DNA of 6,618 nucleotides, taken from Prasinococcaceae sp. CCMP 1430. Lineage: Eukaryota > Plantae > Prasinodermophyta. The translations under genes were made by a program, and so were the position numbers. The stretch covers positions 246,461 through 253,078 of the forward strand of contig RQSC01000031.1 in the NCBI GenBank assembly GCA_013416795.1, in the 5' to 3' direction. The notes below the pieces were generated by a model that worked only from the letters and a program-made list of their open reading frames with translations, had not been told where the DNA came from and did not search any database. The number at the start of each line of letters is the position of its first letter. Position 1 is the stretch's first letter. This document shows positions 1 through 6,618 of this stretch, one piece after another.

Positions 1-291
1 CTCATCCTCGTCGCCGTCGCATCCGCCGCCGCCAGTGCCCTCGCAGGCTCGGGCGAGCGACCACAGGCTCACGCCCGCGGCGACGTCCGCTGCGAATTTG
101 ACCGCGCCAGCGGCGGACTGCGCTCGGCCGTGCACGAGCCGCGCGTACGGCGCGCCCGGCCGCGCGAGCAGTGCCGCCGCGCCGCGCCGCTCCACGCAGA
201 GGGCGAGGCCCAGCGACGTCCGCGCGTGCTCGAGGCGGAGCGCGCCGCCCGTCGGCGGCAGAGCACAGTCGGCCGCCGCCCTAGCGCACAT
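1..291 (-). CDS. Possible hypothetical protein or exon running off the left edge of the window
   Basis: The minus frame from ATG 291-289 is open to base 1: MCARAAADCALPPTGGALRLEHARTSLGLALCVERRGAAALLARPGAPYARLVHGRAQSAAGAVKFAADVAAGVSLWSLARACEGTGGGGCDGDEDE. It is Ala/Leu/Gly-rich with mostly G/C-ending codons and no recognisable motif. Open frames are cheap at this GC content, and the start is uncertain. Confidence 0.3.
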   Translation of the reverse strand, partial: MCARAAADCALPPTGGALRLEHARTSLGLALCVERRGAAALLARPGAPYARLVHGRAQSAAGAVKFAADVAAGVSLWSLARACEGTGGGGCDGDEDE

Positions 292-778
292 CGCCCGCCG
301 GCGACCGCGCGCCGACGCAAACGCCAGCCCTTTCGCTGCCCCCTGCGCCCCTCGAACGTCACGATCGGGGCGGACAGGGCGTGTGCATGCGCGTGGGCGC
401 GCGCGCGCGTGCGCGCGCGTGTGGGGAGGGGGCGAGGCGCCGGCGGGCAGCTGCCTGGCTGCGCGCTGGCGCGCGACGCGCCGGCGGCTGCCGCATGTAG
501 GTAGGGTCTTGGTCTTTACCCTAAACACCACACCACACGAACCCAATCCTATCGCGCGGCACCGTGGAGGCTGCAGACCTGCGCTCCTGCGCGCGCATGC
601 CCGGGGGCCGGGGTCGCGGCACGCGAGCAGGCGACCGCCCGAGCGCGCGCGCGTGCGCGCGGGGTGGGGCTCTCGGGCGGGCGCGCCCGAGGGTACATAA
701 ACGTGCTCTCCAGTAAGCTTCACCCTCCGCAGCAAAAGTGCAGGCCGGCGCCGTCGGCGCGGGCGCGCTCGCGAGCGC

Positions 779-1411
779 TCAGTTGGCGACGCACGCGGCG
801 AACCCCTCGTTGAGCTCCTTCCTATCGAGCTTCTTGCCGATGAAAACCATCTTGTTGATGCGCTCCTCACCGTCAGCCCAGGGCTTGCCCACGCCCTCCG
901 AGCTGTTGGACATGCCCATCATCATGTGCACGGCCTGGAAGACCCACTTGTCGGGCGAGTCCTTGATAGCGAGGATGCCCTTGCTGCGGTAGATGTCGGC
1001 GCCCTTCTCCTGCAGCAGCTTGCCGAGCCACTGGTTGAGGAGGTTCATGTCCATCTCGCCGGCGAGCGTGATGCCCACGCTCGAGACCTCGGAGTCGTGC
1101 TTGTGGCCGTGCGCGTGCCCGTGCTTGTGGCGCTTGTGGTCGTGCGTGGGGTCCTTGTCCTCCTCGCCCTTGCCGTGGCCGTTGCCGTGACTGTCACCGT
1201 GACCGTGGTCGTGCGAATCCTCCTTGTCGTGGTCGTCGCCGTGGCTGTGGTCGTGGCTGTGCGAGTGGTCCGAATCCGAATGGGAATGCTCGTCAGCCTC
1301 CACGAAGTGCTCGTCCACATCCGCCACGATGCGGTTCAGGTCGAAGCGCTTGATGCCAAGGATCTTGTCCAGGTCGACGACCGAGTTCGTGGTCTCGATG
1401 ATGTCGCAGAA
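779..1411 (-). CDS. COG0523/CobW (ZNG1/YjiA-like) G3E metal-binding GTPase, last exon: His-rich linker and CobW C-terminal domain
   Basis: AG acceptor at 1413-1412, then FCDIIETTNSVVDLDKILGIKRFDL, a His-rich tract, and CobW_C motifs DIYRSKGIL, WVFQAVH and KMVFIGKKLD. TGA stop at 781-779. The exon is 633 nt and joins the upstream exon in phase 0. Confidence 0.93.
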   Translation of the reverse strand, partial: FCDIIETTNSVVDLDKILGIKRFDLNRIVADVDEHFVEADEHSHSDSDHSHSHDHSHGDDHDKEDSHDHGHGDSHGNGHGKGEEDKDPTHDHKRHKHGHAHGHKHDSEVSSVGITLAGEMDMNLLNQWLGKLLQEKGADIYRSKGILAIKDSPDKWVFQAVHMMMGMSNSSEGVGKPWADGEERINKMVFIGKKLDRKELNEGFAACVAN

Positions 1412-1511
1412 CTATCAGGCGCGATAATGGCATAGGTCAGGCGTATGTGCGAAGCGAGCACGCACGCGCGCGCGCGCGTGGGCGAGGGCGACGACGCGCG
1501 CGCCATCGCAC
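1412..1511 (-). other. Spliceosomal intron (100 nt) of the CobW-family gene
   Basis: AAG|GTGCGA donor, CTGAC branch-like motif (1440-1436) and TGATAG|TTC acceptor. Removing it restores AINK|FCDIIET. Confidence 0.88.
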
Positions 1512-1915
1512 CTTGTTGATGGCGTTGATCTGCTTGCGCACTTCGGCCTTCTCGTCCGCGGAAACGAGGTCTGTCTTGTTGAGCAGGATGCGGTCAGCAA
1601 AGGCCACCTGCTGCTCGCTCTCGTTGACGCAGTCCTCCTTGACTTCGTTGAGGTGCAGCCCGATGTGCTTGGCGTCAACCACTGTGAGGATCGAGTCGAT
1701 GTACAGGTTGGCCTTGATGTCCTCATCGGTAAAAAAGGTCTGTGCAACGGGCGCGGGGTCGGCGAGACCGGTGGTCTCAATCATGATTGCGTCGAACTTC
1801 TTCTTCTGACGCATCAGGCGGTTGAGGATGCGGATGAGGTCGCCGCGCACCGTGCAGCAGATGCAGCCGTTGTTCATCTCGAAGACCTCCTCCTGCGTCT
1901 CGATCACGAGCGCGT
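1512..1915 (-). CDS. COG0523/CobW GTPase, middle exon
   Basis: [15 protein letters not shown] (the CxCC metal site diagnostic of COG0523), [13 protein letters not shown] (Walker B ExxG) and [14 protein letters not shown] (G4 NKxD). The exon is 404 nt, phase 1 in and phase 0 out. Confidence 0.95.
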
Positions 1916-2108
1916 CTGCCGCGCGCAGCGAGGGGGCACGGGGCGGGCACGGGTGGCGCGGCCGCGCGGGCGCGGGCGATAGGCCGAGGACCGAGCGCGC
2001 GCGTCAGCGTCCATCTCAGATGCGCGCGCGCACACGAGAGAGACAGACACAGAGAGAGAGAGAGTGGGGCGCGACGCTGGAATGGCTGCATCGCCTGCTC
2101 GCTCTCAC
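1916..2108 (-). other. Spliceosomal intron (193 nt) of the CobW-family gene, containing a CT/GA microsatellite at about 2036-2064
   Basis: GACG|GTGAGA donor and GGCAG|AC acceptor. Splicing gives GID-D-ALVIET in frame. Confidence 0.88.
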
Positions 2109-2225
2109 CGTCGATGCCGATCTCGCCGAACTCGTTCTCAATCACGGCGATCCTCTTGCCATGGTTGCCCGTCAGGATGTGGTTGATGAGCGTGGTCTTG
2201 CCCGCGCCAAGGAAGCCCGTCACAA
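2109..2225 (-). CDS. COG0523/CobW GTPase, Walker A exon (first exon visible; the true start exon was not found)
   Basis: CCGCAG|TT acceptor with ACTGAC branch motif at 2280-2275, then [38 protein letters not shown] (Walker A GxxGxGKT and the ENEFG motif). Confidence 0.95.
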
Positions 2226-2755
2226 CTGCGGGCGCATGCGACCAAGAGCGGCCGAAGGCGCGGCGCGAGCGCGCGTCAGTGCGGGCGCAGCAGGCCGGCG
2301 CGCAGCGGCTCCGGGAGCAGCGCGCGCGCGCTTCCTGCTCCGTCTCTGCCGCGCCCACTCCCTCCCCTCTCTCGCCCCCTCGAGCATGCAGCCACCCACG
2401 CACACACTCACGCGCCGCCTAACCTGACGCCCTGCAGCGCTTCCTCAACCCAGCGCCCAGCGCCCGGCCGAGCGCTCGGCCAATGCGCTGCGCCCCCCTC
2501 GCTGGCGCCCGCCTTCGGCGACGCAAAGTAAGGAAAAGGGCGCGGCGCGCGCCCCGGTTCCGCGGCGGTTCCGTTCCGTGTTTCCGCCGTTTGGGATTCG
2601 CACGGCGCGCGCATGCGCCCGAATTCCGCGCGTTCCCCCCATCCGCCCGCACCCCGTTTTCGCGCCGCTGCGCGCCGAAGCGTCGGTCAGAGCTCGGCCC
2701 GTCTTCTTCGGCCGACGGACCTCTCCCCGCCGCGCTCCGACTTTTTTTTTTCGCC

Positions 2756-2787
2756 CGCGCGCGCGCGCGCGCGCGCGCCCGCGCGCG
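2756..2787. repeat. (GC)n microsatellite preceded by a T run
   Basis: About 11 GC units at 2756-2777 follow a T run at 2742-2751. Similar (GC)n tracts occur at about 397-419, 643-660, 1465-1478, 2320-2331 and 4329-4340. Confidence 0.8.
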
Positions 2788-3551
2788 GGCCACAGCCACC
2801 CCAGCCGGAACATGGCAGCAGTCGGGGCCTTTGGTCCGGCCTTCTCGCCGCGTGGCGCCGCAGGGGAGGAGATCCGCATGCGGGCCCACGGTCGCGCGCG
2901 GATCTTTTCGGAACGCCGCGCGCGACGACGGGGCGGACGCAAGATCATTCGCCAATCAACCAAACAACCAAACACAGAAAAAACGGGTGAGGAAGGAGAG
3001 TGGGTGCGGGTGCGAGAAAGGGTGTTTGGGGGTGGGCGACGGCCGGCGCCCACGCAGGGTGGAAAAGAAGCAAAAACACACCCGAGCTTGCGCGCGGTCT
3101 GAGGCGCGCGAAGAGGGCGCCGAGCGGAATTCGAAAACGGGCGCGGCGCCGCGCGCGCACGCACCGACCAAACAATTCACACTTTTGCAAGCAGCCACCC
3201 GGCAACAGACAAGACATGCACAACTGCAACCGCCGGCCAGCACGCCGTTGAACATCCCACCGACCGGTCGACCGATCGCGATGGGAGCGCAAACGAACCA
3301 CACCGAAAAACCCGGCGCCCCGCTCCCCTGACTCTGATGACTGAATCAAATCAACAGCCCTCAATCAATCAACAGCCAGACGCGCCGCGCGGGGGGCAGG
3401 GTGGCCCGGTGGGGACCTCAACCCTGCCGCCCCGAACCCTCATCGTCGCCCTCACCCTAAAAAACAGGGCGGGAAGGAGGGGGAAAAGGTGCGAGCGCGG
3501 GCCGCCCGAGCGCAGGCCGCTGGGCGGCCGCAGGCGCGGCCGGGGCCGCGG

Positions 3552-3656
3552 TCCGGCGGCGGGCGCGGCGCCACCGGCGGCGGCGCCACCGGCGGGCATC
3601 GAGGCGAGCTTCTCGGCGCCCTCCTTGATCATCTCCTCGAGGTCCTTGCCCTCGAT
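3552..3656 (-). CDS. RPLP2: 60S acidic ribosomal protein P2, downstream exon (3'-truncated; similarity ends in the Ala/Gly hinge)
   Basis: TTCCAG|ATC acceptor, then IEGKDLEEMIKEGAEKLASMPAGGAAAGGAAPAAG, which is the typical P2 helix and hinge. The frame continues into unrelated sequence to TGA at 3371-3369. No EESDDDMGFxLFD tail was found. Confidence 0.85.
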
Positions 3657-4002
3657 CTGGAAGGGCGCGCGGCGAGGCGACGGGGCGGGGGCGCACCAGG
3701 GCGGCGCGTGTCAGCATGACGCGTCGACGATAGGTCAACGATCGCTCCCAGCCCCCTCCCTCCCACGCTCGCCGCCTCGCGCGGCGAGGCAACCACGCGC
3801 AGGGAGCAATCTCGCTCGCGGCGGCACTGGCGGGCGGGGCCACGGGCGAGCAGCCGAGTCGCGCGCCCGGCATCGCACGCAGCGGCAGCGCGGGGACGCG
3901 CCCGACTTCGCACGCGGGCGACTCCGCGCGCGGCCGCAGCTCGCAGCCCCTGATCCTCTCCTCTCTAACCCCTTTCGCGCACACACGAGCACCGCCACGC
4001 AC
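3657..4002 (-). other. Spliceosomal intron (346 nt) of the P2 gene
   Basis: GAG|GTGCGT donor, CTGAC at 3714-3710 and CCAG acceptor. The phase 0 join gives LLLKE|IEGKD. Confidence 0.87.
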
Positions 4003-4130
4003 CTCCTTGAGAAGGAGCTCGATCTTGGCGTCGTCGGCCTCGACGCCGGCGGCCGAGAGGATGGCCTTGATGTCGGCGGCGGAGCCGTCCTTGCCGGCCT
4101 GCTTGGCGAGCATGTACGCAGCGACGACAC
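4003..4130 (-). CDS. RPLP2: 60S acidic ribosomal protein P2, N-terminal domain exon
   Basis: CAACAG|GT acceptor with CTGAC at 4158-4154, then VVAAYMLAKQAGKDGSAADIKAILSAAGVEADDAKIELLLKE, matching the P2 pattern MxxxAAYLL...SAxDIKxILxSVGxEAD. The phase implies a tiny ATG+1 nt first coding exon. There is no ATG on the minus strand in 4131-4399. Confidence 0.9.
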
Positions 4131-5351: not shown

Positions 5352-5431
5352 GCTCGCGCGCTCGGGGGGGGGTGGGTGGGGGAAAACGCTTTTTTTTTTT
5401 TTATTTGCTGTAAAACAGACCTTTGTTCGCA

Positions 5432-5464
5432 CCAGCCAGCCCGCCAGCCTCCAGCCAGCCAGCC
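5432..5464 (+). repeat. Imperfect (CCAG)n tract directly before the endonuclease start codon
   Basis: ccagccagcccgccagcctccagccagccagcc followed by ATGG. Confidence 0.7.
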
Positions 5465-6578
5465 ATGGCGGCCATGAGCCGGCCGGCGCCGCCGGCGGAC
5501 AGCCCCGCCGCGCGCGCCGCCGGCGAACCCCACAAAACCTCTTGTGGGATGTGGGTGGGCGTGCCGGACTGCCGCCAGTTTTTTTGGGGGTGCAAAACTC
5601 TGGATGAATGCTGGGGCTATGGGAGCGGCGCGTTTGAAGGGGATGGGCACTTTTCTGCCCGGGACGGCGACCCGCTCATTGCATTCAAAAACACCTCCGA
5701 AAGGATGGTGAGGCTGCAGGAGTGCCTGTTTCGCAGCGCTGCCGATTTCGCAGCGCAGGTGCACAAATATTACCCCAAAAACCCTGCGCGCAAACCCTAT
5801 TGGGTGCTCAAACTCGCAAACCGCGGAGCGATTTGCGCGATCGTTGCAAAAATGCGCAAATATCTGTGCGACAAAAAAAGCTTCGAAGCACGCATTTTGC
5901 TCAGAAACTGCGGCGCTGGTGGCTTTGAAATTGCCCAGACGGAGGAGGAGCGCGAGGCCGAACGCGCGCAGCGCGAAAAAAAATTCGCGGCGCTGCCGGA
6001 GGGGGAGCGCCGCGCCTGGGAGGCCGGGGTGAGGGACGCGGACGGCGTGAACCAGTTGGTGGATTTGGCGGAGCGCGACGCCAGCGGAAGGGTGCGGTCT
6101 GTGGCGTGCGAAATCCAAATGACCTGCCCCAGCGTGATTTTACGGTTGCTGCGCGCGAGCGGAGTGAAGACCGTGGGAATCCACGTAATTCCCGCGCGCG
6201 CGAACAACAAACCGCGATACACTTTTCGGTTTTCGCGGCGCGGCGACGTCGCGCGCGTCATCGGCGGGTACGCCCGTTTTTTACAAAGCGAGAAAGCGCG
6301 CGGGGCGGCGGACGCGCAGCTCGCAGAGCTGAAGCGCCGCGACGCGGAGGGCGTGCCTGAACCGGTGTTTCTGAACACCACACATGAGCAGCATCGCCAG
6401 CGCCAGCTCACCGACGTTGGCGGCCGCCTTGGCGGGAGCGGCCGCGGGGGCAAGCTCCTGGCGCAGGCACCTCATCGCCGCGGCCGTGCCCCCCGAGTAC
6501 AGCGCCTCGAGGTACTTCTGCTGCAGCAGGGCGAACCACGCAGCAGCCATCGCCTGCGCCCACACCCGCGCCCACACC

Positions 6579-6618
<40 letters not shown>
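5465..6618 (+). CDS. Double-motif (monomeric) LAGLIDADG homing endonuclease; nuclease portion about 5465-6379 (about 305 aa), frame open to the window end
   Basis: Manual translation of plus frame 2 from gccATGg, with an upstream in-frame TAA at 5411. Domain 1: CWGYGSGAFEGDGHF (motif 5621-5647) ... PLIAFKNTSERMVRLQECLF ... NPARKPYWVLKLANRGAICAIVAKMRKYLCDKKSFEARILL. A charged linker follows. Domain 2: RAWEAGVRDADG (motif 6020-6046) ... ACEIQMTCPSVILRLLRASG ... NNKPRYTFRFSRRGDVARVIGGYARFLQSEKARGAA. The two halves repeat the same LAGLIDADG pattern, and there is no stop or frameshift. Confidence 0.85.
6380..6553 (-). CDS. CTLH-domain exon of a WDR26/GID7-like protein, interrupted after LMC (possibly a gene fragment or pseudogene)
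   Basis: GCGCAG|GCG acceptor, then AMAAAWFALLQQKYLEALYSGGTAAAMRCLRQELAP...GELALAMLLMC. This resembles the WDR26-type pattern FLLLQQKYLExL...ALxxLRxELxPL...LMC as recalled. Codons are strongly G/C-ending. After LMC the frame enters the endonuclease antisense strand and stops at 6283-6281. Confidence 0.72.
6556..6618. repeat. (GCGCCC)n hexamer tandem repeat with CACACC variants, probably intronic; the window ends in it
   Basis: 6.5 perfect units at 6580-6618, with degenerate units at 6556-6579. Confidence 0.9.

Follow-up and report, generated by a model that had tools for sequence, protein, structure and literature searches.

The nuclease gene and its neighbors

Besides a gene for a predicted nuclease, whose features are collected in Table 1, the window, by which we mean the whole 6,618-nt stretch of DNA analyzed here, contains CobW, ribosomal P2-like, and CTLH genes, all with introns. 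The nuclease frame begins, as an earlier note on this DNA had described, at an ATG (position 5465) within a GCCATGG context; an in-frame stop lies upstream at 5411-5413. This start context is host-like, and no sigma-70-like site was found upstream of the gene (5352-5464). The same note had taken 5465-6379 to be an intact reading frame, which does not hold: position 6379 is no stop, and the frame stays open for 384 codons up to the window end, leaving this copy without a stop codon. The frame is missing from the list of open reading frames because no stop occurs before the window end, which explains an omission that the note had rightly remarked on. The nuclease core reaches its full extent at about residue 296, and the gene's own end is absent from the window copy; past the core, the frame crosses the CTLH exon antisense, then the intron microsatellite, and runs off the window. 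A 261-nt contig under organism label C spans 5417-5674 with 11 differences (96% identity) and no gap listed. The His/Cys-rich stretch ahead of domain 1 (5531-5611, with the residues named in Table 1) might bind metal.

Table 1. Features of the nuclease gene and of its junction with the CTLH exon, in window coordinates.
Feature	Position	Strand	Remarks
Upstream region and probable 5′ leader	5352..5464	+	T-run, then CCAG repeats; start context resembles the host CobW start
N-terminal leader, Ala/Pro-rich then Cys-rich (H23, C27, C36, C43, C49)	5465..5593	+	Unstructured in a low-confidence model
LAGLIDADG domain 1	5594..5950	+	Motif GSGAFEGDG with Asp60; Lys137/138 close to the domain end
Charged, probably helical linker	5951..5992	+	Second genomic copy stops matching at ~5993-6017 (rough estimate from depth bins)
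LAGLIDADG domain 2	5993..6358	+	Motif EAGVRDADG with Asp193; helix-strand-strand-helix-strand-strand-helix plus closing helix
Stretch with a second genomic copy	6018..6325	+	43 differences in 308 nt (86% identical), no gap listed
TGCCTGA	6354..6360	+	Last bases common to both nuclease copies; in the uninterrupted CTLH gene, the same 7 bases extend across the break site
24-nt junction filler	6361..6384		6-bp hairpin plus 6-nt direct repeat of the flank; absent from the other nuclease copy and from the intact host gene
Truncated duplicate exon of the WDR26-like CTLH gene	6385..6553	-	Differs from the intact gene by about 5%; continues antisense into the nuclease, with a stop at 6281-6283
Spliceosomal-type intron end (CAG acceptor) and CGCCCG microsatellite	6554..6618	-	Arg-Pro repeats in the nuclease frame

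On the left side of the window, a CobW/ZNG1-type GTPase with a long His/Asp-rich insert is encoded at 779-2228 (minus strand), its exon 1 missing in the window; wild CobW/ZNG1 versions vary in length (174-182 amino acids in the last open reading frame). The P2-like gene (3554-4129, minus strand), which from its sequence we take to encode the 60S acidic ribosomal protein P2, gave no exon match in homology searches; its exons are without the acidic C-terminal tail seen in wild contigs, and its start lies in or near the N-gap. Wild marine contigs match window positions 1-2463 at 97-99%. The following ~1.1 kb (2464-3553) is rich in A/T runs, apparently non-coding, and stands in place of ~1 kb of the wild contigs; compared with wild contigs L011, L012, and L015, part of the P2 C-terminal exon, the intergenic region, and CobW exon 1 are missing. 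Both joins of this block lie in low-complexity GC sequence, and it represents either a real deletion-insertion or a gap-fill error. On L011, a 1216-codon open reading frame without a significant Pfam match (5121-8771, minus strand) lies beside a PhyH dioxygenase gene and is conserved in several wild contigs. No empty insertion site was seen, the wild CobW contigs ending at the RPLP2 tail.

A two-domain LAGLIDADG protein of phage-like type

Both helices that had been read from the sequence are present: GSGAFEGDG ends at Asp60-Gly61 and EAGVRDADG at Asp193-Gly194, 133 amino acids apart. Sequence searches of Pfam, NCBIfam, and the PDB with the nuclease protein gave no LAGLIDADG match, and a word-index homologue search returned no relative. 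The only family-profile match was to PHROG 5046, over residues 52-147 (E = 2.5e-4), with the second half matching weakly. This family includes gp14 of LittleE, whose N-terminal part passes the cut-off of PF14528 (LAGLIDADG_3), such that the recognition by Pfam models foreseen in the note came only by way of a phage family that holds such a domain. LittleE gp14 itself (L026:9064-9597, minus strand) is annotated as "HNH endonuclease" and lies antisense in a putative group I intron; PHROG 5046 carries the same HNH label, despite the LAGLIDADG_3 domain.

We built a profile from nine phage LAGLIDADG proteins, with a seed taken from a weak fold match, and scored the nuclease protein against it. The total reached 28.1 bits, with 14.4 and 11.6 for the two domains, compared to a maximum of 5.8 among 2000 shuffles; Asp60 and Asp193 both align to the conserved acid of the phage motif (motif position 8). 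The two halves of the protein also resemble each other. By ESM Atlas features, double-domain LAGLIDADG_3 clusters were found at 0.92 with 174-181 shared, a borderline value for recognition.

The model of domain 2 (pLDDT 66) displayed the order alpha-beta-beta-alpha-beta-beta-alpha and matched ESM Atlas LAGLIDADG clusters at a TM of 0.52-0.56 over 103-109 residues. When domain 2 was searched against the PDB with Foldseek, ~30 of the best 50 rows were organellar intron-encoded LAGLIDADG proteins, with I-CreI second (E = 0.012), and the VIA fold comparison gave Z of 4.7-4.8, the PDB fold scores being individually weak. Domain 1 did not fold in the model. Modeled at full length from the single sequence, the protein gave a poor structure (pLDDT 44), with ACT-like top matches because a strand-helix substructure is shared. 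Structure prediction thus bore out the expected fold for the second domain and not for the first. Combining the lines of evidence, we regard the LAGLIDADG assignment, as predicted from profile scores and models, as secure, and the double-motif protein that the note had proposed holds up, since the phage profile scores both halves and both catalytic acids are in place. By analogy with established LAGLIDADG chemistry, the protein would be an active nuclease.

The gene stands free, outside any recognizable intron or intein, as had been claimed. No Hint-domain match was found in the nuclease, which has its own ATG after an in-frame stop and a neighbor gene on the opposite strand; no zinc finger was matched in Pfam, NCBIfam, or the PDB, and no Cys pairs follow domain 2; and Rfam gave no group I or group II intron match within 5352-6618. 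A probable RNA contig runs across the nuclease-CTLH junction unspliced, with no joint seen. We found no viral hallmark gene or close viral homologue in the window or in IMG/VR, and no transposase gene nearby.

A repair-type junction with a truncated host-gene duplicate

Read-derived contigs tile positions 5352-6521 with zero differences, and the right-hand junction is spanned by contigs covering 6331-6521 in DNA and 6288-6521 in a probable RNA run. The depth over 5352-6521 is 66-104, similar to that of unrelated low-complexity contigs that match there (84-94); the nuclease-CTLH segment of the window is at about single-copy depth, and its GC content is 63%. In all, 16 DNA data sets contain the stretch; they carry two organism labels and most probably are lines of one clone and not independent support. 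Mutation-accumulation lines exist for Prasinoderma coloniale, the presumed host species, which is haploid (PMC11884799), and if the 15 similar runs are such lines, they count as one clone. The right-hand nuclease-CTLH junction is confirmed as real and nuclear. The nuclear context reported before therefore holds on this side. Across the 952-N gap on the left, linkage is doubtful, as the assembler may have started in an intact CTLH gene and passed into the nuclease-fused duplicate.

The TGCCTGA microhomology at the junction has a rough chance probability of 3e-4, and it is followed by the filler described in Table 1. Microhomology together with templated filler is typically seen where a double-strand break has been repaired by end joining.

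The CTLH exon beyond the filler has WDR26 as its best PDB match, a weak one (E = 0.16). Two further versions of this exon occur in the same DNA run, both departing from the window at 6385, as does a 1557-nt contig of the probable RNA run. Their continuation reads LLRQG, and therefore an uninterrupted CTLH gene exists and the window exon is a truncated duplicate; the uninterrupted gene is probably transcribed. The exon versions differ by 3-7%, compared to 0.5-1% for CobW exons among wild contigs. At window position 6489, a C>T difference gives Gly (SGG) in the duplicate exon against an apparent Asp (SGD) in the intact versions. The orphan exon is also extended by 35 codons that run antisense to the nuclease (6281-6553, minus strand). 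The probable RNA contig at 6288-6521 has a depth of 19, versus 25 for the intact CTLH transcript, and the orphan-exon transcript could act as an antisense RNA that silences the nuclease. No contig of the probable RNA run X17 covers 5465-6287, and nuclease mRNA was thus not seen there.

We rejected two other placements of the gene. A position of the nuclease within a spliceosomal CTLH intron does not fit: in the intact transcript the exon just carries on, and there is no host-type donor at the junction. A fusion "after LMC codons" does not fit either, as LLRQG is what the intact gene encodes here, and the codons for Met-Cys belong to the filler. A wild CTLH locus was not found in our searches. 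Spliced gene models were searched one exon at a time.

A second copy with a conserved core and changed outward residues

The genome contains at least two copies of the nuclease. Our analysis of the second copy rests on 37 of its 43 differences, in domain 2 only; none of these 37 changes introduces a stop, and they leave the catalytic motif unchanged. The amino-acid changes concentrate on the outward face of strands 2-4, at positions predicted to read the DNA (e.g., E216A, Q218R, G238K, R251Q, R255Q, and S257R). Outward strand codons were changed in 9 of 12 cases and inward ones in 0 of 11 (p = 3e-4), and the outward pN was 0.44 against a pS of 0.20 (p = 0.02), with a core pN of 0.03; these p-values are indicative, as the hydrophobic alternation in the window protein served to tell the strand faces apart only once the changes had been seen, and the test covers 12 outward codons in two sequences, while surface residues vary more in any protein. 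The pattern points to purifying selection on the nuclease core, and the two copies are predicted, probably, to recognize different sites. In the depth arithmetic, a further contig (depth 64) matches 6331-6360 and ends exactly there; therefore, the other nuclease copy continues differently beyond this point. This second copy may be without domain 1.

Decayed wild relatives and a foreign composition

An exhaustive search of 1.8 billion representatives returned only two frameshifted fragments of domain 2 and no full-length orthologue of the nuclease, and IMG/VR, JGI metagenomes, GTDB, and GenBank phages held no relative of it. The decayed fragments are 75-82% identical to the window copy, with a dN/dS of about 0.22, and sit with other apparent gene fragments in a 1.2-kb mosaic on four marine contigs (L001-L004), flanked by host-like microsatellite DNA. 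Besides a repeated subterminal motif of 35 nt, the mosaic (L001:520-1750, and also on L002-L004) contains what appear to be pieces of two or more other genes. It has the same right flank in two sample sets (91% identical) and no match in IMG/VR.

The codon use of the nuclease, judged by its Lys codons (AAA:AAG of 15:2, versus 0:18 in a host exon), is foreign. A/T runs occur at 15.6 per kb in the nuclease versus 1.2 per kb in the host, and this composition also marks the non-coding block at 2464-3553 and the wild mosaic. The trinucleotide profile of the nuclease correlates with that of the 2464-3555 block at r = 0.81 and with the wild mosaic minus its nuclease part at r = 0.78, compared to 0.42-0.55 for host DNA; the test is loose, as an unrelated phage reaches r = 0.79 with the same block.

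Discussion

The reading that we favor, with a confidence that is about evenly balanced, is that of a selfish family of free-standing nuclear meganuclease genes, phage-like in type and copied into breaks by repair. A two-domain (monomeric) phage-like LAGLIDADG gene would have settled in an algal nuclear genome as a small selfish family. The predicted protein, once expressed, would bind a long site across its two sheets and cut it, and the gene would then be copied into the break during repair, where synthesis would end at a short microhomology and end joining would close the gap. Such copying would leave nuclease copies beside host-gene fragments, as in yeast WHO10, and the window copy would be one such product, with its own stop codon lost at the join. 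The second copy, the decayed wild fragments, and the repair-type junction to a truncated host-gene duplicate are consistent with the "undescribed nuclear selfish element" that the earlier note had suggested. Against this reading stand the A/T-run composition common to the non-coding block and the wild mosaic, by which the gene could be a passenger, the individually weak fold matches, the lack of any nuclease mRNA seen, and a presumed host, Prasinoderma coloniale, in which no sex has been observed (PMC7455551).

Among known systems, the phage LAGLIDADG_3 proteins (PF14528; PHROG 5046 with mycobacteriophage LittleE gp14; ESM Atlas clusters of 260-275 amino acids) are like the algal nuclease in domain length, first-helix motif, and strand pattern, and their "PYL-x-x-R/K"-like closing helix aligns with it. 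Identity is only ~20%, however, with no significant pairwise match in any database, and the algal gene differs in its eukaryotic nuclear location and host-like leader. A viral derivation, which had been offered as an option, finds its nearest known families in phage proteins and no direct viral source.

The yeast WHO genes, and especially the dispersed WHO10 (PMC7282813; 10.64898/2026.08.13.744650), are likewise free-standing nuclear double-LAGLIDADG genes with several diverged copies, an adjacent host-gene fragment, and decayed copies; WHO10 insertions carry gene fragments (PMC7282813). Unlike these, the algal protein of 300 amino acids has no intein-derived part, no C-terminal zinc finger, and no FBA1. 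Without the intein-derived part or zinc finger, it is not a member of the WHO family; by analogy, it may work like a WHO element. A WHO gene is flanked on one side by its full-length target and on the other by a piece of that target starting at the cut site; in the alga, a fragment lies on one side and an intact gene exists, but this fragment comes from the 5′ part and lies on the opposite strand, whereas that of WHO is 3′. HO, VDE, and nuclear or giant-virus intein endonucleases share the two motifs in one chain and the nuclear location, whereas the algal gene has no Hint match, no same-strand extein, and its own start codon. Organellar intron-encoded enzymes (of the I-CreI, I-OnuI, and I-SceI type) have the same fold, but the algal gene has no surrounding group I or II intron RNA, is GC-rich and about single-copy, and gave no LAGLIDADG_1 or LAGLIDADG_2 Pfam match.

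It is unlikely, in our judgment, that the locus is instead a site-specific mirror image of a WHO element, targeting the WDR26-like gene. The element would then consist of a new 5′ half, a promoter, and the nuclease, with the old 5′ half, orphaned by cutting and repair, still transcribing into the nuclease tail, an arrangement that we likewise doubt; and the assembly gap would conceal an intact WDR26-like gene immediately to the left of the nuclease, which seems to us equally improbable. The orphan 5′ exon does break mid-exon and abut the nuclease, the probable RNA contig spans that join, and the three CTLH-exon versions in a presumably haploid strain are far more diverged than wild CobW exons; the diverged nuclease copies would fit an arms race. 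Yet the intact gene and the 5′ side of the nuclease are unlinked in the data, the other copy leaves at 6360 into non-CTLH sequence with no joint listed, the break site is not an obviously conserved stretch of protein, and the join removes the stop of the nuclease, unlike a tidy element end. Were this so, the alga would hold an independent green-lineage homing element of a third category, neither intron nor intein, that joins a phage-type nuclease, a WDR26-like target, a swap of 5′ halves, transcribed orphan halves, and an arms race on DNA-reading residues, for which we see a similarly small chance.

We are about as skeptical of the nuclease being cargo of larger foreign or mobile DNA, either an eroded endogenous virus or a fragment-capturing transposon, with the CTLH join as an incidental capture or rearrangement scar; selection on the nuclease within the life of this larger element would be of the same low probability. 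The trinucleotide profile shared with the non-coding block and the wild mosaic, and the frameshifted nuclease piece amid other apparent gene fragments on L001-L004, would fit such cargo, and green-algal endogenous giant viruses do carry homing endonucleases (10.1101/2024.09.03.611062). However, the LAGLIDADG genes of the Chlamydomonas endogenous giant virus are inteinic (10.1101/2024.09.03.611062), the viral, GTDB, metagenome, and phage collections gave no relative, no viral or transposase gene lies nearby, the start context is host-like, and the unrelated phage matches the block about as well.

A domesticated and duplicated host gene, either an HO-like programmed cutter or a WhiA-like DNA-binding regulator, is very improbable: the host-like leader, the purifying selection on the core, and the 96% identical 5′ piece under another organism label would suit this option of the note, but the lost stop, the unadapted codon use, the lack of mRNA over the gene body, the decayed wild fragments, and the lack of a full-length orthologue speak against it. 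Least probable of all is an assembly artefact in which contaminant or organellar DNA was fused to a nuclear exon, for which the adjacent 2464-3553 block could be cited, and which is largely refuted for the right junction by independent DNA and probable RNA contigs that span 6361-6385 with zero differences, by the near single-copy depth and GC content, and by the recurrence in the 16 data sets.

The selfish, repair-copied family that we favor would extend a lifestyle that the literature we searched describes only in yeasts. According to the WHO papers, homing elements in eukaryotes comprise introns, inteins, and yeast WHO elements (PMC7282813; 10.64898/2026.08.13.744650), and our search, of incomplete coverage, turned up no family of free-standing LAGLIDADG genes in algal nuclei. 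A second example from a green alga, with a construction of its own, would show that this lifestyle is not peculiar to yeasts. Moreover, two natural versions with an identical core and nine changed outward strand residues provide ready material for testing how meganucleases change their specificity. Should homing prove real, it would constitute indirect evidence for cryptic sex in Prasinoderma, and if the nuclease indeed targets the WDR26-like gene in an arms race, a diploid stage would be implied in an alga without observed sex.
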